Source of the DNA: Ranitomeya imitator
Taxonomy: Eukaryota
Length of the DNA stretch: 64,000 nt
NCBI RefSeq assembly: GCF_032444005.1
Contig: NC_091290.1
Coordinates: forward strand, 131,626,001 to 131,690,000
Direction: 5' to 3'
Shown here: piece by piece, positions 344 to 36,974 of the stretch
How the letters are laid out: every line of letters starts with the position of its first letter
Position numbering within the stretch: the stretch's first letter is position 1
The notes under the pieces: model-generated
What the model was told of the DNA's origin: nothing
Seen by the model: the letters and a program-made list of their open reading frames with translations, nothing else
Database searches by the model: none
Made by a program: the position numbers and the translations under genes

Positions 344-3300
344 GTAAGTATCAACTTAGGGTGCCAGAAAATAGATCATCTGTGTCAGAAACGAAGACAT
401 ATTAAAATGTTGAACTTTGGAAGTCAACCTTCTCGTGGGGGACCATTCATGCTCATGGCTTTTCGAAGGTCCTCTCCATAAATCAACAAACATATATTTG
501 CACCTTGTGAACCCCTGAAACGTCCAGCAAACTTCCAGCACCAATACGATGATTGACCTGACCCTAATGTTTCCCCAAATTCACAGAACAGTACACGTTC
601 AACGTCTACGAGGATCTGAGAGTTGGAGAAGTGGTGGGAAAGATTTCGGTAGAAGATGTTGATGAACCACAGAACAGAATTGCCAAGTACACTTTTATGA
701 AAGGCATATTTGAGCAATGGTTTAAGATAAAAAGCAATCCCCAGACCAACGAAGGGATAATCATTCTCACAAAGGTATGAAAAGGGGCCTCTGCCCATCT
801 TTTCGCCCGTCTGTGCCTCTTGCTATAAACACGTCTCTCGTTTCAGCCTCTGAACTACGAGAGTAGTGATAAACAATTCAGAATGAGCATTGAAGTCACC
901 GACCCCTCCATTGACCTCCGAGTGGCAAACCAGCAAAGGCCAAGCAGCACCACTGAAGTCATCATCAACGTCTTGGATGTGGATGAACCCCCCGAGTTCA
1001 TGGACCCTTTCTACCTGTTCAAGGTGAAAGAGGATGAGAAACAGAAAAATATCGGTTTTGTATCGGCCGTAGACCCTGATTTTCCCAAAAAAGTTGTGCG
1101 GTAAGAATCGTTATTTAATTTGTTGTATCGTAACCATGCAGAAATATTTCTATTACGGTTAAAAATTAAAAATAAAAATGAATGGAGGCAGAAACACTAA
1201 CAGTGAGCCACAGGCTGTACTAGTATATATTAGACATATATATTAGACACACATTTACATCCCGTGTAGCTTTTTATAAAGGAAACTAAGAGAACATGTC
1301 CCCTACAATGGACACTGTTGGAGGGATGCCCTTATATGTTAAATTGTTATACCACTACTTCTTTTTCCTAAGTCTTTGCAACATATTGTATGGGAGGTAG
1401 AAACACTAACAGTGAGCTACATGCTGCACTAGTATATATCAGATACAAATTTACATCCTGTGTAGTTTTTATATTAAGGAAAGTAAGAGAACATTTCACG
1501 TCCACCATTGGAGGGATGCCCTTTGGTTTAATTTTTATACCACTACATCTTTTTATTAAGTATTTGCAACCTGCTGTATCGGAGGTAGAAACACTAACAG
1601 TGAGCCACATGCTTCATTATTACATATTAAACTCTTTTCTCTGAAAGAAAATTTCATTAGTTGTTTTTATCTTCTTTACGACACATACTATGTTAAGATT
1701 GATGGCAGAATTTTAAAATAAAAAAAAAATAAAAAAACTATTTTGCAAAATTGTTCAAAAGGCATATAAATCTGCACAGCATTACCAAAGCATTAGAAAA
1801 ACTACCATTTATTTCCCCAAAAAAAGTAAAAAAATAAAAATAAAAATACTGACGCGTTTCAGGCTGGTCAATAGTCTTTAGCCATAGAATTCTGTGCAGT
1901 GATTAAAAACCGTAACAATTGTACAAATTGTAATTTGGGGTTTTCTAGGACTGTGTGATCGATGACGTATTTTTTGGGTCCCACGTGGTGCAGATCTTTT
2001 TCTTCTATTATCTCATTGTAGGTATTCTGCCAAAACCAGCAAAGACGACCTAATTAGAGTGACCGACAATGGAAGTATTTATGTTGGGAAGTCGCTTGAT
2101 AGAGAGACCAGCGCTTGGCACAATTTTACTGTAATCGCTGAAGAAGTTGGTACGTATTATTTTACATTCTATTTGGTGTGCTGCAAATTTTCATCAATTT
2201 TATTTCTGGTGGAGTCAATTAAAGGAGTTGTTCACCTTTGGATCCCCTTTTTTATTTAAATTTTGGACTAAAAATCATTTTTGTAATTGGGTTTCTTTAA
2301 ATATTTTGCATCGTTTGGCTTGCACAGGCTATGTTCAACTGTAATGTGATCTGTGGTCATAAATCAGCTCAGGGGAGGGTAGAAAAAGATTTGTGAGCTC
2401 ACTGACAGATCCTCAGTTAACTCATTCTGCAGCCAGCAATAGAAAAGGCAGCACAGAGGCTGTAGAAGGCAAACGGTGCAACATTTTTAATTGCAAAAAT
2501 GATTTTTTTTTTTTTTTACAACCAATTACATGCATCTAAGTGAAAAATAAATTGTTTCTAAAGGTGGACAACCCTTTTAATATGATGGGAGAATGTGATT
2601 TTAGGATTATAAATTTAACAATAACTCCTCATTGCAGACTCTGCAACGAAGAAATCGTCGTCAGCAAATGTGTACGTACAGGTGCTGGATGTCAACGACA
2701 ATGCCCCCGAATTTGCCGAGCCCTACGCCCCAAGGGTGTGTGACAATACCGCCAATGACGAGGTAAGTGATTGCGACCCGTCTGTGCACTTATATTGCAG
2801 AGATTTCCAAAAGTAAACTAAGTTCAGTCAAACCTGTCGATATCAAAAGGTCCGGATAATAACCTAATGAGTACAGAGGGCCACAGATTCCTCCCCGACA
2901 GGCGATGAAGATCCAACATGTCTAATTTCCTACTGCCAATCCTTTTATAAGGTGTCGCTTCTGGAATAAAGAGGTCACCACTCATGCCACCACCGATCAA
3001 TACAATGTCTATGAGATTGCCAGAAATAGCTGGGCACTATCGCTTTATATAGACCCCAATCTGTTGGTCTTGGGTCTGTATCTGTGTAATGAAAAGTTAA
3101 ACTTTGTTCTCCACATTCCTGTGCTTCTCGGCTATCCACGGAGGACACCGCCAAAGACAACATACTTGAAGCCACTAGACGGTGGCACTCAGGCACACGT
3201 ACATGCAATTTAAAGCTCCCCTGAGAGTCTGGGACAATTCCCTTTCTTCCAAAACTGACAAGTATGTCCCATCATATATTTAGAGTATCTTCAGAACCAT

Positions 3301-6128
3301 TTGTCCTGATGGACACAATGTATGAAAGTCCAATTCTGGTTATAAATAATCTTTTCTATGGTTTTTGCATGAATTGATACAGTACCACATAATATAAATG
3401 GTTGGTACATAAAATTAGATAAATGGAAATAGGGGAACATATGTGTAGCTGGGTTAACTGGCTCAGGGACAGGAAACAGAGGGTGGTTAGTAATGGAAAA
3501 CGCTCAAATTGGGTCCCAGTTAACAGTGGAGAATCACAGGGGTCAGTATTGGGCCCTCTTCTTTTTAACATTTATTAATGACCCTGTATAGGGCATACGG
3601 AGCATTATTTCAATATTTGCAAATGATACTAAACCCTGCAAGGTAATTTATTATGACAGTGGGATTTATGTAAGCTGGCGGCTTGGACTGAAAAATGACA
3701 ATTGAATGTAGATAAATGTAAGGTCAGGCACTTTGGCAGAAGAAATGAAATGTATAATTACGTACTAAATGTTAAAACACTGAAAAAGGCTGGGTGTATG
3801 GGTGGACGACAAACTCAACTTTAGTGGTCAATGCCATGCAGCTGCTGCCAAGGCTAATAAAATAATGGGATGCATTAAATGAGGCAGAGACGCTCTTGAG
3901 TAATTTTGATCCAAAGTTGAAATAATTGAGCATTAACCTTTAACGTTTGCTCATCTGTCTCCTTTTAGGCCATCTTAACCATCTCAGCAACTGATAAGGA
4001 TGAAATGCTCCCGGGGACGAAGTTTACATACTATTCGGCGGAGAAAGAAAACAATTTCACAGTGGTGGATATTCGCGGTATTGTGCTGTTCTTCCCCGTT
4101 AGCCTCCAGTGCACACACACAAATACCACGCAGAAAACTCAGGATGTGGCTCTGTAAAATGTAGACATTTTGATTTAAAGACTGGTGGCTCCATCTATCG
4201 GGGTACAGCGAGCATTTCCCTCTGTAATATACGTGCCCCGTCTTCCGCTAGAACGGAACTCACCAGATGGGGAATTTGTAAACTGTCCTAAATTAGGAGA
4301 AGGAAGGAAATCAAGTGCAAGAAGTATAAGCAAAGTACAGGACTTCGCACAAGATGATTGTGCCAGCATCTCCAGATTTATAGAGAAGCAACAGGACCCT
4401 CGCAGCGGCGGTGCGGCCATAATATAGCTAGTCAAATCAATCTCCACTAAGCTGAAACGAATCGAGCGTTTGTCCAGAATAACAAAAAATATATATATTT
4501 TTTAAATAGCGCCACACCTGCCTACAGGTTGATTGTGGTATTGCAGATTAGCTATTTTATTTATGATTCTGGACAATGACATATTCCAACATCAAAATAA
4601 TTTTTACAGGATCGGAGCCCCCAATTATCACTGGAAAGGGAGTCCTTTATTTGCACGAGCATGACCAATGCAACTCTCACTGTGGTGATGTATGCGCATT
4701 ACAGCACCCGTAGATAGAGAAGGGACTAGCAGAGGTCAATGCATGCGCACTACTGCTCCTGCTCCATCCACTGGCATGCTGGGACCCCCATTACTGGGAT
4801 CAGTGCACCCCAAGTGTGATGCTGCCTCTGTACCCCAAGAGTGACTGCTGCCTCTGCACCCCAAGTGTGGCCACTGCCTCTGCACCTAAAGTGTGGCCAC
4901 TGCCTCTGCACCCCAAGTGTGATGCTGCCTCTGTAGCCCAAGTAGGATTTCTGCCTCTACACCCCAACTGTGATGCTGCCTCTGTACCCCAAGTGTGATG
5001 TTGTCTCTGCACCCCAAGTGTGATGCTGCCTCTGCACCCCATAGCTTTGTGCACTCAGTCGACATATAAATGTCTCATACACTGATGATGTCTCACGTTA
5101 CCTGTGACCTGACGTCTGGGATCATTTTCTCCTCTGCAGATAATACAGCACAAATCGTAGTGAAGAATGGAGCCTTTAATCGCGATGTGACGAAGTTCCA
5201 CTACCTGCCAATAGTGATCTCTGACAACGGAGTGCCGCCCCTGAGCAGCACCAACACTCTGACCATCACGGTTTGCAAGTGCAACGAAGAAGGCAAATTC
5301 ACTTACTGTGAGGAATACCTAAAGCAGACGGCAGTGTCGTCCTCCACCATCATCATCATCTTCTGCAGCCTAGCGCTAATCCTTCTGTGCGGTGAGTCTC
5401 CATCAGGTCTGGTGCCTCCATCAAATTACTCCTTTTTAGGCCAGTTTTACACATCCATGATTTGCGGTTCCAATATCCATTGACCCAAACCCAACATGCC
5501 GATCAGCTCCATACTTGGACCATGAAAAGTGGATGTGTGACACTGACCCTACACTAGTTTCTGTTGGACCATGGGTGTCCAGATCAATGAGCAGTTTACG
5601 GTCTTGACTTTGATCTCTGATTTTGTTTTTGCAGTGCTCGTAGCATTTCTGATACTGCGGAGGATGCGCAGTAATGGCCCCCTGATGTTAATGAAGAACC
5701 CAGCAGAAATCCACGAGCAGCTGGTGATCTACGATGAGGAAGGAGGAGGAGAAATGGACACCAATGGATATGATGTGTCCGTGCTCAACTCTGTGCGTAG
5801 AAACGTGGCGAGGTCAAAGCCTGACATGGTGGAGCCTTACCCCAACCTGTACGCCCACGTCCAGAAACCAGCCAGAAATGGAGACATGTTCTCCATGATC
5901 GAAGTGAAGAAAGACGACGCGGACAACGATGGAGACTGCCTGCCCTACGACACCCTCCACATATTCGGCTATGAAGGCTCCGAGTCGAATGTGGAATCTC
6001 TCAGCTCCTTGGAGTCCGGATCATCAGATTCTGAAATCGACTATGATGTGTTAAATGAATGGGGCCCCAGATTTAAGATGCTGGCTGACCTGTACGGCCT
6101 GGAAAACCTGGAGGAGTTTCCTTATTAA
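176..6128 (+). CDS. CDH5: Cadherin-5 (VE-cadherin), 3' part: join(176..343,587..774,847..1100,2022..2149,2638..2762,3969..4077,5140..5391,5635..6128); 5' exons lie upstream of the window
   Basis: Eight exons with ag/gt junctions and consistent phases. They encode cadherin repeats ([33 protein letters not shown]), a TM segment and a tail ([41 protein letters not shown]) that matches VE-cadherin as recalled. BEAN1/TK2 synteny agrees. Confidence 0.95.
587..774 (+). CDS. CDH5: CDH5 exon (QYTFNVYED...EDVDEPQNR...NEGIIILTK)
   Basis: cacag acceptor, gtatga donor, 188 nt. Confidence 0.92.
847..1100 (+). CDS. CDH5: CDH5 exon (PLNYES...DVDEPP...[10 protein letters not shown])
   Basis: tttcag acceptor, gtaaga donor, 254 nt; overlaps ORF 883..1104. 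Confidence 0.93.
2022..2149 (+). CDS. CDH5: CDH5 exon (YSAKTSKDD...[18 protein letters not shown])
   Basis: tgtag acceptor, gtacgt donor, 128 nt. Confidence 0.9.
2223..2576. mobile_element. TTAA-flanked non-autonomous MITE (T2/Kolobok-like). Related internal motif gagctcgctgatggtttctcagttaactcattc recurs at ~7920-8160, ~8930-9260, ~26610-26650 and ~55170-55270
   Basis: TTAA at 2219-2222 and 2577-2580; imperfect TIRs AGGAGTTGTTCACCTTT / AAAGGTGGACAACCCT; dispersed copies in the window. Confidence 0.6.
2638..2762 (+). CDS. CDH5: CDH5 exon ([35 protein letters not shown])
   Basis: ttgcag acceptor, gtaagt donor, 125 nt. Confidence 0.92.
3220..3905 (+). mobile_element. Degenerate CR1-type LINE reverse transcriptase fragment
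   Basis: Plus strand encodes [11 protein letters not shown]...SIFA(N)DTK across frameshifts; ORF 3356..3571 is its antisense shadow. Confidence 0.7.
3969..4077 (+). CDS. CDH5: CDH5 exon ([11 protein letters not shown]...[10 protein letters not shown])
   Basis: ttttag acceptor, gtattg donor, 109 nt. Confidence 0.9.
4795..5040. repeat. ~25-bp minisatellite (caccccaagtgtgatgctgcctctg)n
   Basis: About 9-10 tandem units visible. Confidence 0.85.
5140..5391 (+). CDS. CDH5: CDH5 exon (NTAQIVV...ISDNGVPP...VCKCN...start of TM)
   Basis: ctgcag acceptor, gtgagt donor, 252 nt. Confidence 0.93.
5635..6128 (+). CDS. CDH5: CDH5 last coding exon (end of TM plus catenin-binding cytoplasmic tail)
   Basis: ttgcag acceptor; in frame with ORF 5571..6128; TAA stop. 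Confidence 0.95.
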
Positions 6129-26000: not shown

Positions 26001-29000
26001 CAGCTCATAAGAGTCTATGAACAGGGCAGGGGGAGGAGCTACAGGCAGACAAAGACATTCTGCACCTCTAGCTCCTCCCCTCTCCATAGACTCTTATGAG
26101 CAGCAACTTTAGTTTCTTATCTCAGTAATGGAAAAATCTGTCTTCACTGAATACAGATTTTACTGCTTTTACCTGTGAATTGAGAGCAAAAGATAAGTCC
26201 GGGAGGAGAAAGAACGTGGACGACTATTTTCACCGCTTCTTGTGCCGTGTTTTACAGATGGGATCTCCTATGCAACATCTTCCTTTGGAGACTTGAGGTC
26301 GGTCTGTACCGGGGACATTTCTCCAGCCTTAGATTTTGGCTCATACCTAGAGCTGAGCGCTTCCTATCCAGATTATCCACCGTGGTAAGAAATGTTTTCC
26401 AATGTGGCGACAATCTAATAATCCAAGGTAACATCTGGTGCCAAGTCCAATGTGCGCAACTGTTAATGGTGTATGCATCATTGGTACTTAAAGGGGTTGA
26501 CCAATTCTATTTTTTTTACTTAAATGAATGTATAAGCTGAGAGGAGCTTAGAAAAAGACAGATAAGAGAGTTACAAACCCACCCATGAGACCATCAGAAT
26601 GAGCTCACTGATGGATTCTCAGTTAGCTCATTGTGCAGCCAGTAATGCAACATTGATTCTGTAGAAGACAAAAGGTACTCACAAGGGGTTAATTAACCCT
26701 CCGTCACATACAATATTCGGACTAACGAGTTCACATACAATGTGCCTGTCAGGCGCCTGCTGGAAAAATACCCATAATATCTAATGTTTGCAATTTCAGT
26801 GCTCTAAAAGTGATCAGTGACCTTCATAGGGATGTTATAAAAGAGACTACACATAATCAGTTGCAAAAAAAAACATTTACTTAACATAAAACTAATAACT
26901 ATGAAATACATACTTTTCAAAACTCCCGCCAAATAGTCCCCAGTTCGACTCTCTCAAAAAAATGTACAAAGAAAATTTTTGAACACAAACTTAATTTTAA
27001 GGTACCTTAAGTACTATTAAAAACATATTCAATCAGAAGTAGATGCTGAGGTTTCCCCAGAAAAGTCACACTTGCAGAGCAAATAGCAAGAATTACACAC
27101 CATTTTTGCATGTGTCAGGCAAATTGCTTTATGACATTTGAGACATTCATAATTTGAAAGCCTTCTGGTTCCGCTTTCCGTTTGGCAGGTGGTGCATCTC
27201 CTTCTTTTGTGAGGTGGTGCAGATGGTGACTTTTCACCATCATCTTCTGGGCGGAACCTTTTGAGCTGAACTTGAAGGCGAGAGGGGATACCGATTGTTT
27301 TCACGCTTCTCCTGCGTAGCTCTCCAAGTACTAGTTCATGGGCCAATTTTTTCAGATACAATCGTCTACGGAGTGGTTCAAGCTTGTTTTCAAGATAAAT
27401 TACTTGTGAATTTATACCACCCAAATTCAACATAGCAAAAAATATGACCATTGGCCAGCGTTTGATGTTTCTGCTGACGTTGAAAGTGGAGCACATCTGA
27501 TCTGCTGTATCCACACCCCCTTTGGTGGCATTGTAAAATGTAATTATCTCCGGTTTTTTTTCTGCCCCAGTCCCAGGATCGATGGCAGCATCATCATGAA
27601 GTGTTGATAGAAGAAGTACGATTTTTTTGGCATGTGGTACATAGGAAACTAAAGCCTTTCCATTATGGAATGCAAACATACTGCTGTACTGTTGTCTCTC
27701 TTTCACACTTACAAACTGTGGCGGCAATTCCCTTTTGTTTTTTCTTACAGTTCCCACATATGACAGCTTCTGAATTTTCAGATAATCAATCAGATCACAA
27801 CTTGTAAACCAATTGTCAGCTGTAATATTGCGACCCGATCCAAATAAGGGTTCAGCCAGTCTTTTTACAACATCAATGGGTTTGTTGCTCACACAGTAAG
27901 GACCTTCTGGTTGTTTTCCTGCATAAACTTCCAGGTTGTAAGTGTAGGTCTTACTGGCATCAACAAGGGCATACATTTTTATTCCATATTTGTTTGGCTT
28001 TGATGGAATATATTGACGAAAGGCACATCTACCACGAAAACCAGGGAGCATTTCGTCAATAGTGAGATTCTCTCCAGGGTAATAACTTTGTTTACAGTTT
28101 ACAACAAATCTTTGAAATATATCACGAATTGGAGCAAGTCGGTCATGTGTTTTGCGTTCGGTTCGGGTAGTTCTGTCGTCAAACCGAAGGCAACGAATTA
28201 GAATCTTGAATCTGTTTATGGACATAACAAGGCTAAATTTTTCAACTCCATCCCCATCTTTACCCCAAAGTTCCTCCAAACTTTGTCTATTTGCCCTATA
28301 AGCTCCTGCAAGGTACAGTAATCCAAAAAAAGCACGCAGTTCTATTTCATCTGTGGGCTTGATGGTTCTGTTGCAGATGTACTTGTCCTTTATAATGTCT
28401 ATATATTGGTTGGTATATGTGACAATAGAGTCCAGAATGTCATCTGTAAATACACTGTTCCAGCATTCAACTGCAGTTTTTGCATTACGTGCAGTTCCTA
28501 TTACTGCAGGAAGGTGAGTAATAATGTTTAAAGGTTCCCTACGTTTTTTCTGGAATGACTTCTTGTTCCATTTAGTATTTTTATCTTTTCTAATATAATA
28601 TGATCCAACTTCTTCATCCTCACCACTGTCACCATCTTGCTCTGTTTCAGAATCCAGGACACATTCTTCCACCTCATCATGAGAATCAATCTCACTTTCC
28701 TCTCCTAAATCCTCATTCAGTGTGAGGTCTCTATCATCTAACAGCATGTTTGTTACTTCCTCAACATCAAGTTGTTTGGATAAATTGTACATTTTCCTCT
28801 CCATTTCAGCAGATAATCTGAAGCAAGAGAAGGAATATGTTAGGGAACTACTGTATATGCCTGAGCAGCACACTTTCTTTTATAAAATCTCCCTTATTTC
28901 TATGAAATATCCTCACATTTTGTGCTATACATTCATAAAACAAGCTAAATAAACTATTGTGATGAATAAAAACATAAAATGCCAACCTTACTGAATGTGA

Positions 29001-32000
29001 CGTATTCACATACAATGAGCCTGAGAGATCTGTGCAGCTATATCCTCTCCCCTGAAGCTCTGAAATCCAACTGTGATATCAGGTTTCACAGACCTTCAAG
29101 AGACAGGAGACTACCTGGAGGGAGGGGGTTTCCTCACAATCTGGTGAGGAAGGAGAAATGAAAGTAAAAGAGAAGCGCCTGTCAGATCAGTTGTATGTGA
29201 CGGAGGGTTAAGGGTAGGGGTTCCATAATTTAGGGTTTATAAGTGGCAGCTGGTTGGGGGTTTCAGTCCTTTGGAAGTGCACTGAGCTGCTGGTTGAGTT
29301 GGTGCTGAAGGAAAAAAAAAATCTTCTTCGTTACCGAGTGCGACCGGAAGTAAGTGTGTGACTTGTGTTTGTGACTTTGCATTCAGGGAGTTTGCAAGGG
29401 AGGAATTGCCGAATTGCTGTTTGCATTTTATTAATACTCTACATTTCTTTTTACTAAACCTTTCTGTCTGGTGCAATCCCCATTAGGAAATGAGCGCCAT
29501 ATCTGACAATACCATCCAGTGTACGTCTTGCCACATGTATGCAATCCTTGATGTGAGCACGTTGAGCATTTGGAAGCCCAGGTTCTGGATCTAATGATCA
29601 TTTTTATAATTGGTCATTATTATTTTTACTACTATTATAGCAAAAAAAATATTGTTCACCTCAGTATACAGGGACCATAGAAATACACTGTTATATATCC
29701 AGTGTATCTCTATGGATATGTCTATTGTGTTACTGGGTGCAGTGACTGACCAAATTCTCACCTGGCTCTTAATGTAAGCTGTGGCTCAGTGGTAGAGCAA
29801 CTGCCTATGACCGTGGAGACATGAGTCCTGATCACAGGAGAGAAAGCAAATCTATAAATACAATTATATTTTTCTAAATTGGTCATTATTTTTACTACTA
29901 TTATAGGGGAAACAAATATTTTTCTTCACCTCAGTATACAGGGACCCTAGAAATACATTGTTATATATCCAATGTATCTCTATGGATATTGTTTTGCTGG
30001 GTTCAGCGCCTATGACCGTGGAAACATGGGTTCGAGTCTTGAGGATTGCTGATCAGAAGTTTGTATATAAACTTGCAGAATGATGGTACATATGCAGGGG
30101 AACATATGTTCCCCCTATGTGGGTATGTGGGTACATATGGGATTTGCAGGGCTATGTGGGTACATATGCAGAGGTTGCAGGGCACATATGCAGGGGTACA
30201 TATGCAGGGCTATGTGGGAACATTTGGGGGGGGTTGCAGGGCTATGTGGGGGTACATATGGGGTCCCAGGGTTATATATGGGGGTTGCAGTACTATGTGA
30301 GAACATATGGGGGGGCAGGGCTATGTTGGGGGTATATATGCAGAGCTATATGGGGTGTGTTAGGGGTACATATGAGGGTTGCTGGGCTATGTGGGGTGTC
30401 GGGACTATGTGGAGGTAGCTTTATGGGGGTACATATGGGGGGTTGCTGTACATATGTGAGAGGAATATATGGGGGGTTGCAGGGCTATGTGGGGTATCTG
30501 GGCTATGTGGGGGTACATATGCATATGGGGGTTGCTGGGCTATGTGGGGTGTCAGGACTATGTGGAGGTAGCTATATGGGGGTACAGTACATATGTACAG
30601 TACATATGTGAGAGGAACATATGGGGGGTTGCAGGTCCATGGGGGGTTGCAGGACTATGTGGGGTATCTGGGCTATGTGGGGGTACATATGCATATGGGG
30701 GTTGCTGGGCTATGTGGGGTGTCAGGACTATGTGGAGGTAGCTATATGGGGGTACAGTACATATGTACAGTACATATGTGAGAGGAACATATGGGGGGTT
30801 GCAGGTCCATGGGGGGTTGCAGGGCTATGTGGGGGAACATATGGGGTGTTGCAGGACTATGTGGGGTATCAGGGCTATGTGGGGTACATATGCAGGGCAT
30901 GAAAGGTGTATAGAAAATATGCTCAGGTGGGGGTACATATGCAGGGATACACATGGGGGGTTGCAGGGCTATGTGGGGTATCAGGGCTATGTGGGGTACA
31001 CATGCAGGGCAATGACAGGAGTATAGAAAATACGCTCAGGACAGGAGAGCCGCCATATTTCTCATTCATTTTACATTGTGTTTTTGTTGTGTAAAATACT
31101 CAGCGTTTTACAGCTTTTTTAAAAATCTCATGCACACCTTCCTTATTTTTTTGTTTTGCTTGCAGATTCAGTTCTGTATCATGTCAATTGTTGCAGTGTT
31201 TTTTTGCAGTCTATTTCACCCATACTATTAAGTTAGTTAAAATATGCAACAAAAACGCATGTAATGTTATTCCTGCCAACACATCTGGTTTTGCAGCAGA
31301 TTTTTTTTTGCTGCAAATCCTGAATATGTGCCAATAGCCTTAGTCCCTGTCCTGTGTCACCTTCCACAATCTACTATATAATTGTCTAAGGGTCACTTCC
31401 GTCTGTCCTTCTGTCTGTCTGTCTGTAACGGTTATTCGTTCGCTGATTGGTCTCGGCAGCTGCCTGTCATGACTGCCGCGACCAATCAGCGACGCGCACA
31501 GTCCGGAAGAAAATGGCCGCTCCTTACTCCTCGCACTCACTGCCCGGCGCCCGCATACTCCCCTCCAGTCTGCCCTCACACAGGGTTAATGGCAGCGGTA
31601 ACGGACCGCGTTATGCCGCGGTGTAATGCAGTCCGTTACCACCGCTATTAACCCTGTGTGACCAAGTTTTTTACTATGGACGCAGCCTATGCAGCGCCAA
31701 TAGTAAAAACATCGAATGTTAAAAATAATTAAAAAAAATAAAAAGTGATTATATACTCACCTACGCCGCCTTTTCCGCTCCTCGCGATGCAACCGGCACG
31801 TTCCGGTCGCACGGATGGTCCGGCAGAAGGACCTGCCATGACGTCACGGTCATGTGACCGCGACGTCATCACAATGCCTGCGCGGAAAGGACCTGCCGTG
31901 ACGTCACGGTCATGTGACCGCTACACGGTCATGTGACCGCGACGTTATGACAGGTCCTGCACGACAAGGACCTGCCGTGATGTCACGGTCATGTGACCAC

Positions 32001-35000: not shown

Positions 35001-36974
35001 ATATAGTGTATAGTGTAGATGTAATACAGTGATCACCAGTGACATTATACACAGGAGCTCAGTGTATAGTGTACAGGTAATACACTGATAACCAGTGACA
35101 TTATATACAGGAGCTCTTGATATAGTGTATAGTGTACAGGTAATAGTGATCACCAGTGACATTATACACAGGAGCTCAGTATATAGTGTATAGTGTACAG
35201 GTAATACAGTGATTACCAGAGACATTATACACATGAGCTCAGTATATAGTGTATAGTGTACAGGTAATACAGTGATCACCAGAGACATTATACACATGAG
35301 ATCTGTATATAGTGTATAGTGTACAAGTAATACGGTGATCACCAGTGACATTATACACAGGAGCTCAGTATATAGTGTATAGTGTACAGGTAATACAGTG
35401 ATCACCAGATACATTATACACATGAGATCTGTATATAGTGTACAAGTAATACGGTGATCACCAGTGACATTATACACAGGAGCTCAGTATATAGTGTACA
35501 GTGTACAAGTGTACAGGTAATAAAGTGATCAGCAGAGACATTATACACAGGAAATCAGTGTATAATGTACAGGTAAGTGATCGCTAGTGACATTATACAC
35601 AAGAGCTCAGTATATAGTGTATAGTTTACAGGTAATGGTGATCACCAGTGACATTATACACAGGAGCTCTGTATTCTTTCTGGTGCAATCCCCATTAGGA
35701 AATGAGCTCCATATCTGACAATGCCGTCCAGTGTACATCTTGCCACATGTATGTGGGGTTGCAGGGCTATGTGGGGGTACATATGTGAGGTTACTGGGCT
35801 ATGTGGGGGTACATATGCAGGGGTATATATGGGGGTTGCAGGGCTATGTGGGGGTACATATGGGGTTGCAGGGCTACGTGGGAGGTATGCAGGGCTATAT
35901 GGGGGTACATATGTGGGGTTGCAGGGCTATGTGAGGGGTACATATGTGAGGTTGCGGAGCTATGTGGGGGTACATATGTGAGGTTGCGGGGGTAGCTGTG
36001 GGGGTACATATGTGGGGTTGCAGGGCTATGTGGCGGTACATATGTGAGGGGTGCAAATGGGGGTAGCTGGGCTATGTGGAGGTACATATGTGGGGTGGCA
36101 GGGCTATGTGGGGGTACATATGTGGGATGTCAGGGCTATGTGGGGGTACATACGGGGGGTACATATGGGGGTTGCTCTCATTACAAGCGGTTGTCCTATG
36201 AAGTGGTAGCAGGGCTATATATGGGGGGTTGCAGGACTATGTGGGGGTACATATGGAGTTGCACGGGGTACATATATGGGGGTTGCAGGGCTATGTGAGG
36301 GTACATATGGGGGGATTGCAGGGCTATGTAGGCTCACTTTGTGCTGTGGACCCTCAAAGCCCAAGGTCCAGGTGGACACGATGCAGACGATTCAGAGGTA
36401 GCAGAGATTCAGGAAACCGCCGACTGGCCGCAGACGTACTGGAAGCCACAGGCAGGCTGGAGATGTCCAGCTGGACTGGACAGCAGACAAAATTCTGACA
36501 GAAAGACATACTAGAAAGGTGTCTTGGTAGGCCCGAATCTATGGGTTTCTGGCATCATCTGACATTGTTAGGGCAGCTACTTCCAATAGGTGACATCAGC
36601 GATATTGTTTTCTTTCCTTCTGGGAGAGCGCTAACAATAATAATTAATAATTCAATGTATTAATCTTGTCCTCCAGCTATGAAGACTGCGTTGGGCCAGG
36701 AACATTGGAAGTGTATCTCCCAGCAGATGATCCTCCACCTTACTCCTTAGAAGATCCACATCTCGGTCCCAGCTCTGCGGAGATGCCACTGTGTTCACAA
36801 ACTGATACAGAACATTTCCAGGTCTCCTCGCCTTTATGTACTGTTAACTTACACGTTGTCACACCGGTCCAGACTACGGCCAAGAGGAGTCTTCACCTCC
36901 CTATAATACCGATGGACATGTTAAAAAACGTTGCCTCCCCGGCCGTTGGGAGGTCAGAGGAAAATATGAGTTAG
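17028..36974 (+). CDS. BEAN1: BEAN1 (brain-expressed, NEDD4-associated), 218 aa: join(17028..17052,23699..23905,26258..26384,36677..36974)
   Basis: MSIKVTCT (cf. human MSFKRPCP), TM segment [33 protein letters not shown] motifs [15 protein letters not shown] and DDPPPYSL. Total 657 nt, in frame across all junctions; lies between CDH5 and TK2. Confidence 0.92.
17478..18860 (-). repeat. 33-bp minisatellite encoding ([11 protein letters not shown] / [11 protein letters not shown])n; homogeneous 17478-18500, degenerate to ~18860
   Basis: About 31 near-identical units plus about 10 diverged units; open frame 17465..18502. Confidence 0.95.
19155..19296. other. Assembly gap (142 N)
   Basis: N run. 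Confidence 1.
20701..21840 (-). mobile_element. Internally deleted Tc1 derivative carrying a 31-bp minisatellite (20829-21785)
   Basis: TA followed by TIR-like CGGTGGCTTGCAAAAGTATTTACCC at 20701; minus-strand unit ccATGAAGACCAAGGAGATCTCCAAACAACA; 372-bp higher-order duplication. Confidence 0.7.
22650..23420. repeat. ~345-bp tandem array with inverted internal symmetry and decayed hammerhead-like cores (possibly Penelope-like pLTR derived)
   Basis: Blocks restart at ~22670, ~23020 and ~23360; CTGA(T/C)GA cores on both strands. Confidence 0.55.
23699..23905 (+). CDS. BEAN1: BEAN1 TM exon
   Basis: ctacag acceptor, gtgagc donor, 207 nt. Confidence 0.92.
24078..25650 (-). mobile_element. Old Tc1-like transposon (~1.57 kb) with degenerate transposase
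   Basis: Diverged TIRs (CAGCAGGTGAAGTAAG / CAGCGGGGAAAATAAG, shared tgacatgaaattctcaccaga); ORF 24462..24650 has [22 protein letters not shown]. Confidence 0.85.
26258..26384 (+). CDS. BEAN1: BEAN1 exon (GISYATSS...SYPDYPP)
   Basis: ttacag acceptor, gtaaga donor, 127 nt, phase 1-2. Confidence 0.88.
26697..29207 (-). mobile_element. Full-length piggyBac DNA transposon (2511 bp) in BEAN1 intron 3
   Basis: Perfect 17-bp TIR CCCTCCGTCACATACAA (26697-26713 and 29191-29207); TTAA TSD at 26693-96 and 29208-11. Confidence 0.97.
27029..28804 (-). CDS. piggyBac transposase, uninterrupted, 591 aa from ATG 28804
   Basis: DDD triad ([31 protein letters not shown]), acidic N-terminus, C-terminal Cys-rich domain CxxC..CxxC..CxxH..CxxC; no stops or frameshifts. 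Confidence 0.95.
   Translation of the reverse strand: MERKMYNLSKQLDVEEVTNMLLDDRDLTLNEDLGEESEIDSHDEVEECVLDSETEQDGDSGEDEEVGSYYIRKDKNTKWNKKSFQKKRREPLNIITHLPAVIGTARNAKTAVECWNSVFTDDILDSIVTYTNQYIDIIKDKYICNRTIKPTDEIELRAFFGLLYLAGAYRANRQSLEELWGKDGDGVEKFSLVMSINRFKILIRCLRFDDRTTRTERKTHDRLAPIRDIFQRFVVNCKQSYYPGENLTIDEMLPGFRGRCAFRQYIPSKPNKYGIKMYALVDASKTYTYNLEVYAGKQPEGPYCVSNKPIDVVKRLAEPLFGSGRNITADNWFTSCDLIDYLKIQKLSYVGTVRKNKRELPPQFVSVKERQQYSSMFAFHNGKALVSYVPHAKKIVLLLSTLHDDAAIDPGTGAEKKPEIITFYNATKGGVDTADQMCSTFNVSRNIKRWPMVIFFAMLNLGGINSQVIYLENKLEPLRRRLYLKKLAHELVLGELRRRSVKTIGIPSRLQVQLKRFRPEDDGEKSPSAPPHKRRRCTTCQTESGTRRLSNYECLKCHKAICLTHAKMVCNSCYLLCKCDFSGETSASTSD
29776..30042 (+). repeat. Two tRNA-derived (SINE-head-like) fragments within a local duplication
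   Basis: A-box TGGCTCAGTGG (~29782), B-box GGTTCGAGTC (~30029), shared gcctatgaccgtgga(g/a)acatg. Confidence 0.4.
30085..31030. repeat. G-rich minisatellite (gcagggctatgtgggggtacatat)n
   Basis: Degenerate tandem units; same family at 35750-36330. Confidence 0.85.
31370..32700 (+). mobile_element. Non-autonomous Helitron with a nested palindromic segment and a 21-bp internal tandem array
   Basis: A|TC start, 3' hairpin cccgat-gcgttaga-atcggg then CTAG|T, no TSD; (ctgggcaatatactacgtca)n at 32160-32650. Confidence 0.8.
33335..35672. repeat. ~60-bp minisatellite (acattatacacaggagctc..tatagtgtacaggtaatacagtgatcaccag)n
   Basis: Roughly 40 tandem units. Confidence 0.95.
35750..36330. repeat. G-rich minisatellite, same family as 30085-31030
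   Basis: gggctatgtgggggtacat units. Confidence 0.85.
36677..36974 (+). CDS. BEAN1: BEAN1 last coding exon
   Basis: ctccag acceptor; [12 protein letters not shown]; TAG stop; ORF 36666..36974. Confidence 0.92.

Follow-up and report, generated by a model that had tools for sequence, protein, structure and literature searches.

How does a transposon of insect type come to lie, with its ends and coding region intact, in the genome of a poison frog, and is it a newcomer there or an old resident? The question is raised by a piggyBac element of 2,511 bp at positions 26697-29207 of a 64-kb stretch of the Ranitomeya imitator genome (the window, by which we mean the whole stretch of DNA that was analysed). 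A reading of the letters alone, here called the sequence-only reading, had taken it for a recent invader that may have come from an arthropod. We arrive at a different history: the element is very probably one copy of an autonomous, class II cut-and-paste piggyBac family that went through a recent burst and that belongs to an invertebrate-type clade, its lineage looking long resident in dendrobatoid frogs and any cross-phylum transfer likely being old.

The element and its transposase

The element has TTAA on both sides and ends in terminal inverted repeats (TIRs) of 17 bp, CCCTCCGTCACATACAA, which match perfectly between both ends and are of the CCC...GGG type. With up to three mismatches allowed, this TIR pattern occurs just twice in the 64-kb window, where 0.07 occurrences are expected, and two occurrences were reached in none of 100 shuffles. 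The transposase open reading frame (ORF) lies on the minus strand and runs from the ATG at 28804 to the stop codon at 27029-27031, encoding 591 aa without an internal stop or a frameshift. The features are the following, UTR being the untranslated region:

26693-26696, no strand: TTAA target-site duplication, left; contigs of other copies end exactly there
26697-26713, plus strand: 17-bp TIR, the 3' end in transposase orientation; carries the motif TCACATACAA at 26704-26713
26731-26740, plus strand: direct, subterminal repeat of the inner TIR motif, spaced 27 bp from the copy in the TIR, as in the related elements L002 and L003
26714-27028, minus strand: 3' UTR
27029-28804, minus strand: transposase ORF, 591 aa plus stop, with DDE_Tnp_1_7, D250/D330/D432 and a C-terminal Cys-rich domain
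28805-29190, minus strand: 5' non-coding region, presumed promoter and 5' UTR; aligns with the 5' ends of the related elements L001-L003
29006-29015, plus strand: internal copy of the motif, in the opposite orientation to the 5' TIR and 185 bp in from that end (185-186 bp in the relatives)
29191-29207, minus strand: 17-bp TIR, the 5' end in transposase orientation
29208-29211, no strand: TTAA target-site duplication, right; contigs of other copies end exactly there

The coding strand of the 3' UTR (26714-27028) holds no AATAAA or ATTAAA polyadenylation signal.

The encoded protein has the parts expected of a piggyBac transposase. Residues 110-466 match the Pfam family DDE_Tnp_1_7 (PF13843; E=7.8e-78; 262.7 bits against a cutoff of 22.4) over profile positions 1-348 of 349, and residues 71-574 align in HMMER with the structure of the Trichoplusia ni (T. 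ni) piggyBac transposase, 6x67 (E=1e-96, 328 bits). In this alignment D250, D330 and D432, each confirmed in the translation, pair with T. ni D268, D346 and D447. The Cys-rich domain, C-x2-C...C-x2-C-x4-C-x2-H-x4-C-x2-C, aligns with its T. ni counterpart; all eight zinc ligands (seven Cys and one His) are present and are invariant in an alignment with eight relatives, and a separate Pfam zinc-ribbon match at E<=0.001 was not found. The sequence-only reading had described perfect 17-bp TIRs with TTAA on both sides, an undisrupted 591-aa ORF with a DDD triad and a Cys-rich domain, and protein motifs of the T. ni pattern. Indeed, the ends are read directly in the sequence; the ORF, Pfam and the 6x67 alignment agree on the protein; and all four quoted motifs align to T. 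ni motifs. The sequence supports regarding the element as a structurally complete, putatively autonomous piggyBac.

The resemblance to T. ni piggyBac (IFP2; 6x67/6x68) extends to the TTAA target, the CCC...GGG ends, the length of about 2.5 kb, the single ORF of about 590-600 aa, the DDD triad, a cross-brace Cys-rich domain at the C-terminus and asymmetric ends that carry additional internal repeats. The two are nevertheless distant, representatives of about this length being about 38% identical. T. ni piggyBac has a 13-bp TIR and 19-bp internal repeats, whereas the frog element has the 17-bp TIR CCCTCCGTCACATACAA, a motif spacing of 27 bp at the 3' end, an inverted copy 185 bp in from the 5' end, 17 extra C-terminal residues and a vertebrate host.

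Placement and residence in frogs

The window transposase, as a query, scores 328 bits against T. ni piggyBac and 104 bits (E=5.5e-29) against piggyBat (9c0f), the vertebrate structure compared. The best of its database matches are RefSeq proteins of R. imitator. Among its best 120 matches, every named one outside the dendrobatoid frogs is from an insect or Hydra; the insects are Schistocerca, whose protein is the closest from an arthropod at 65% identity, and Harmonia, Diabrotica, Ctenocephalides, Anabrus, Onthophagus, Zophobas, Photinus, Periplaneta and Ephemera. No protein of a non-dendrobatoid vertebrate, Xenopus included, is among these 120. In a maximum-likelihood tree of 41 rows, nine of them frog, the window copy groups with the R. 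imitator proteins P0001 and P0123 (support 100/100), its own lineage, at 99% identity. Next out is a lineage of Phyllobates terribilis and Anomaloglossus baeobatrachus at 88-90% identity, followed by one of R. imitator at 78%. Together with two more R. imitator lineages, at 67% and 66%, the nine frog rows make up a single, weakly supported clade (86/41). This frog clade joins Schistocerca and Hydra (92/91) within a larger clade dominated by insects, which also contains unnamed rows. The label "insect-type" given by the sequence-only reading is thus upheld by the bit scores, the named matches and the nesting in the tree; these comparisons support a transposase of the insect, T. ni type and not of the piggyBat type. 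Myotis piggyBat and Xenopus TxpB/Uribo2 are like the frog element in being autonomous or recently active vertebrate piggyBacs that insert at TTAA, but the former matches the window transposase at just the 104 bits given above.

The frog sequences comprise at least four lineages in three genera (Ranitomeya, Phyllobates and Anomaloglossus), and their clade is about as deep as the split between frog and grasshopper sequences, which points to an old presence with diversification, or to several old entries, and not to a fresh invasion. The other dendrobatoid lineages (R. imitator P0003, P0005 and P0008, the P. terribilis P0013 cluster and A. baeobatrachus P0131) share the frog clade, ORFs of about 585-602 aa and the conserved ligands of the Cys-rich domain, but are only 66-90% identical to the window transposase. 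Within this clade, P. terribilis P0013, P0125, P0127 and P0129 are 97-98% identical in protein to A. baeobatrachus P0131, the Phyllobates copies are 94-98% identical among themselves, and both genera stand at 88-90% from the Ranitomeya lineage. Aromobatidae have been placed outside Dendrobatidae. The closeness of Phyllobates and Anomaloglossus departs from the host tree, and sorting of old subfamilies, strong purifying selection or frog-to-frog transfer are possible reasons.

Base composition is a further source of evidence on residence. The observed/expected ratio of CpG is 0.42 in the element and 0.44 in its coding sequence (CDS), within the 0.37-0.48 of the surrounding frog DNA, and TpG/CpA is in excess in the element (1.3-1.36). 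The CDS of the relatives has a ratio of 0.93 in L001, 0.76 in L002 and 0.82 in the Hydra-like L003. Depletion of CpG to the host level is suggestive of a long residence in the frog genome.

Recent horizontal transfer from an arthropod, for example via prey, would leave an element still close to its donor. Dendrobatids feed on arthropods, the transposase is plainly like those of insects and T. ni, the closest named non-frog proteins among the best 120 are from grasshopper, beetles and Hydra, and the distribution among annotated vertebrates is patchy. However, the best arthropod match is just 65% identical, the frog sequences have a deep clade of their own with at least four lineages, CpG in the CDS is at the host level, and the core of the terminal motifs, described below, differs from that of the relatives at all four sites. 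In addition, a k-mer search for near-identical DNA gave no non-frog-looking run besides one metatranscriptome with a share of 0.07, and the TIR pattern is missing from the viral contigs scanned. On this evidence a recent arrival is very unlikely, and the claim of a recent invasion in the sequence-only reading does not hold up; if there was a cross-phylum transfer at all, it was probably old, and may have gone in either direction.

A viral carrier was also considered. When viral and metagenome contigs were scanned for the TIR pattern, any five nucleotides being allowed as its core, 117 matches were obtained, none of them with a GGGCG or ACATA core and all without a piggyBac-like continuation. 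They were judged to be chance or prokaryotic matches, and no vector is indicated.

Copies, age and genomic setting

The family is multi-copy. The two further 591-aa RefSeq proteins of R. imitator, P0001 and P0123, are encoded on other chromosome-sized records and differ from the window protein at eight and six residues, respectively. Nine family copies, sampled because gene models overlap them, each show 2-11 differences from the majority residue over the aligned part (246-591 aa); the differences are mostly private, and the pattern is star-like. Contigs of four public runs were aligned to the element and its flanks. A 2,550-nt contig of run X13 spans the element from TTAA to TTAA with eight differences and then enters other, unrelated flanks, and a 2,509-nt contig of run X6 differs from the window copy at seven positions. 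Full-length contigs that end at TTAA and have differing flanks show that the family is multi-copy and that its boundaries are exactly the TTAA sites. Pieces from organism L are about 99% identical and those from organism M about 98% (55 differences in 2,665 aligned bases). About 0.92 of the 31-mers of the element are held by 19 public runs under seven organism codes, and two more organism codes hold 0.66 and 0.50; the 20 rows of this 31-mer search that hold any part of the stretch come from nine studies. Two aligned runs outside organism code B also carry copies of the repeat that flanks the element in the window. An empty-site-like joint, 26696 to 29217 with a single TTAA and of paralogous origin, was seen in two runs, and with sides of only 18-21 nt it is weak evidence. 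A paralogous empty site was also sought in the window, where none was found and just short repeat fragments of the flanks recur.

These near-identical copies, together with the intact 591-aa ORFs on other chromosomes, support a recent amplification of the family. The divergence of the window copy from the majority sequence is about 0.3% (7-8 differences in about 2,510 bases); with 1-2e-9 per site per year assumed as the neutral rate, its insertion would fall roughly one to a few million years ago. It has three private coding changes, at residues 72, 83 and 118, all nonsynonymous and none synonymous, which fits neutral drift of this copy after insertion.

We propose the following course of events. 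By homology to the T. ni transpososome, the 591-aa transposase would bind both ends through repeated motifs: each TIR supplies one, the 3' end has another 27 bp further in, and the 5' end has an inverted one at 185 bp. Excision would be the work of the DDD RNase-H-like site, and the element would reinsert at a TTAA and duplicate it. The window copy would have arisen in this way, in a transpositional burst of a near-identical master sequence, and would then have drifted neutrally. The family belongs to an invertebrate-type piggyBac clade common to insects and Hydra, the frog branch of which has presumably been resident in dendrobatoid poison frogs for long and has diversified there.

Is the family still mobile, or is it a relic of a burst that ended a few million years ago, its window copy intact only through shortage of time and since silenced or inactivated? 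Every sampled copy has several private amino-acid changes, none of the nine equals the majority sequence, the private coding changes of the window copy are without a synonymous one, and neither insertion polymorphism nor clear RNA was seen in the contigs examined. At the same time, three or more full-length ORFs with perfect ends remain, high-depth full-length contigs occur in runs guessed to be RNA, and only copies that a gene model overlaps were sampled, so that there may be younger ones. We regard extinction as nearly an even call, leaning slightly against it. A domesticated, PGBD-like host gene derived from a piggyBac is a different matter. RefSeq labels copies "piggyBac transposable element-derived protein 4-like", and several of its models join a copy to a host gene; yet the perfect TIRs and the TTAA duplication are kept, many near-identical copies with differing flanks lie on several chromosomes, and all three private coding changes are nonsynonymous. 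Domestication is so improbable that we give it hardly any weight. Contamination was ruled out by the embedding in frog sequence, the multiple copies and the host-like CpG.

Several points weigh against the history of an old resident with a recent burst. The CpG comparison rests on three comparator elements, and any donor may itself have been CpG-poor. At the 24 CpG sites common to two relatives, CpG is kept at 11 in the frog element and at 12 in L003 (GpC control: 17/26 and 15/26, respectively); with retention equal at common sites, the depletion of CpG lies at unconstrained sites. The single frog clade is weakly supported at 86/41, and the comparison with other vertebrates was made at the level of protein, not DNA. 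An open frame of 591 aa is expected by chance at 0.3% divergence, and thus intactness is no proof of function; moreover, the three private substitutions might impair the window copy. Finally, the contigs of the four runs in which no insertion polymorphism or clear RNA was seen come from runs that are "RNA" by guess.

The surroundings of the insertion are less clear than the element itself. The sequence-only reading had put it inside the BEAN1 gene, which we could not confirm. Motif searches found a sole ORF with a PPxY motif (YEDCVGPG...PPPYSLEDP; 36651-36971, plus strand), about 7.4 kb from the element. We take it to resemble the C-terminal exon of BEAN1. An Atlas look-alike search with this ORF gave no support for BEAN1, its best match being TMEM51 at 0.85, a weak lead, and no upstream BEAN1 exon was located within the 64-kb window. 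Both flanks (26434-26667 and 29359-29592) are repetitive, with many loose-ended contigs at a depth of 20-107 in three of the four runs aligned, and thus the piggyBac landed in or beside older repeats; 29462-29541 recurs at 35674-35753 with 94% identity. The window also contains 296 N at about 15.1-15.4 kb, where an ORF from 15089 enters a stretch translated as X, taken as an assembly gap or a masked stretch. Elsewhere, pieces of the transposase are found in annotated host proteins (RefSeq/GenBank models P0121, P0002, P0106, P0013, P0125 and P0129), which include ASB1, an ankyrin protein, MFSD1, SUGCT, HSD17B7 and C1QTNF7. Such pieces are either exonised insertions or annotation artefacts.

A rewritten motif core at the ends

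The 10-nt motif TCACATACAA occurs four times in the element, with 0.31 occurrences expected in the whole window. The sites are the 5' TIR, the inverted copy inside the 5' end, the subterminal copy at the 3' end and the 3' TIR. The related elements L001-L003, with which the frog core, read in the R. imitator window family, was compared, have the same four motif sites (the sequence of L001 is truncated at its 3' end), and their non-coding termini align with those of the frog element. The inverted copy lies 185 bp inside the 5' end in the frog and 185-186 bp inside it in the relatives, and the subterminal copy lies 27 bp from the 3' TIR copy in the frog as in L002 and L003. The first nine bases of the TIR, CCCTCCGTC, are identical in L001 and L003, including the 3' end of L003, and have one change per end in L002. 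The conserved layout argues that the four motifs are putative transposase-binding sites; in the T. ni structure, the Cys-rich domain binds internal repeats.

The relatives come from a clade of Hydra vulgaris, insect and Logan-contig sequences (L003/P0017, L001/P0004, L002/P0009 and Schistocerca P0010). Their transposases are 61-67% identical to that of the frog element, and L002 and L003 are similar in length (2,477-2,485 bp vs 2,511 bp in the frog) and in their conserved subterminal sequence. The 5-nt core of the motif is different: CGCCC in the relatives and TATGT in the frog, at all four sites, so that the 10-nt motif reads TCGGGCGCAA on the opposite strand in the relatives and TCACATACAA in the frog. 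Three of the five changes from CGCCC to TATGT are of the CpG-decay type. L003, at 1156-3648 of an 86-kb ENA contig, is itself a complete Hydra-like relative, with 2,485 bp from one TTAA to the other, an ORF of 604 aa and the four-motif architecture. Its protein clusters with near-identical ones, 15 in all, among them RefSeq entries of Hydra vulgaris, and the element looks like another young, intact family.

The rewritten core of these predicted binding sites is the most interesting detail of the element. A concerted change at all four sites suggests co-evolution with the transposase. We tentatively offer an extended scenario, which we consider rather doubtful as a whole: dendrobatoids would host a long-lived, invertebrate-type piggyBac radiation, and in the Ranitomeya lineage all four motifs would have been rewritten from the CpG-containing CGCCC to the CpG-free TATGT while the transposase presumably co-evolved, an adaptation to a CpG-methylating genome by an element that is still active. 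If this were true, it would be a still-active element with a DNA specificity orthogonal to that of its invertebrate relatives.

Literature searches found no published description of this element; the retracted R. imitator genome paper lists just 10,239 piggyBac fragments, 0.12% of the genome. The failure of the claim of a fresh jump from arthropod to frog lowers the surprise of the locus. Complete young piggyBacs, few of which come from vertebrates, are what gene-transfer tools are made from; the R. imitator element contributes a family whose clade has otherwise been met in insects and Hydra. Its equal architecture with a different core at four of four predicted sites offers a natural experiment in the co-evolution of a transposase and its binding sites. 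The presence of several deep lineages of the clade in poison-frog genomes is relevant to the frequency and the age of piggyBac crossings between invertebrates and vertebrates.

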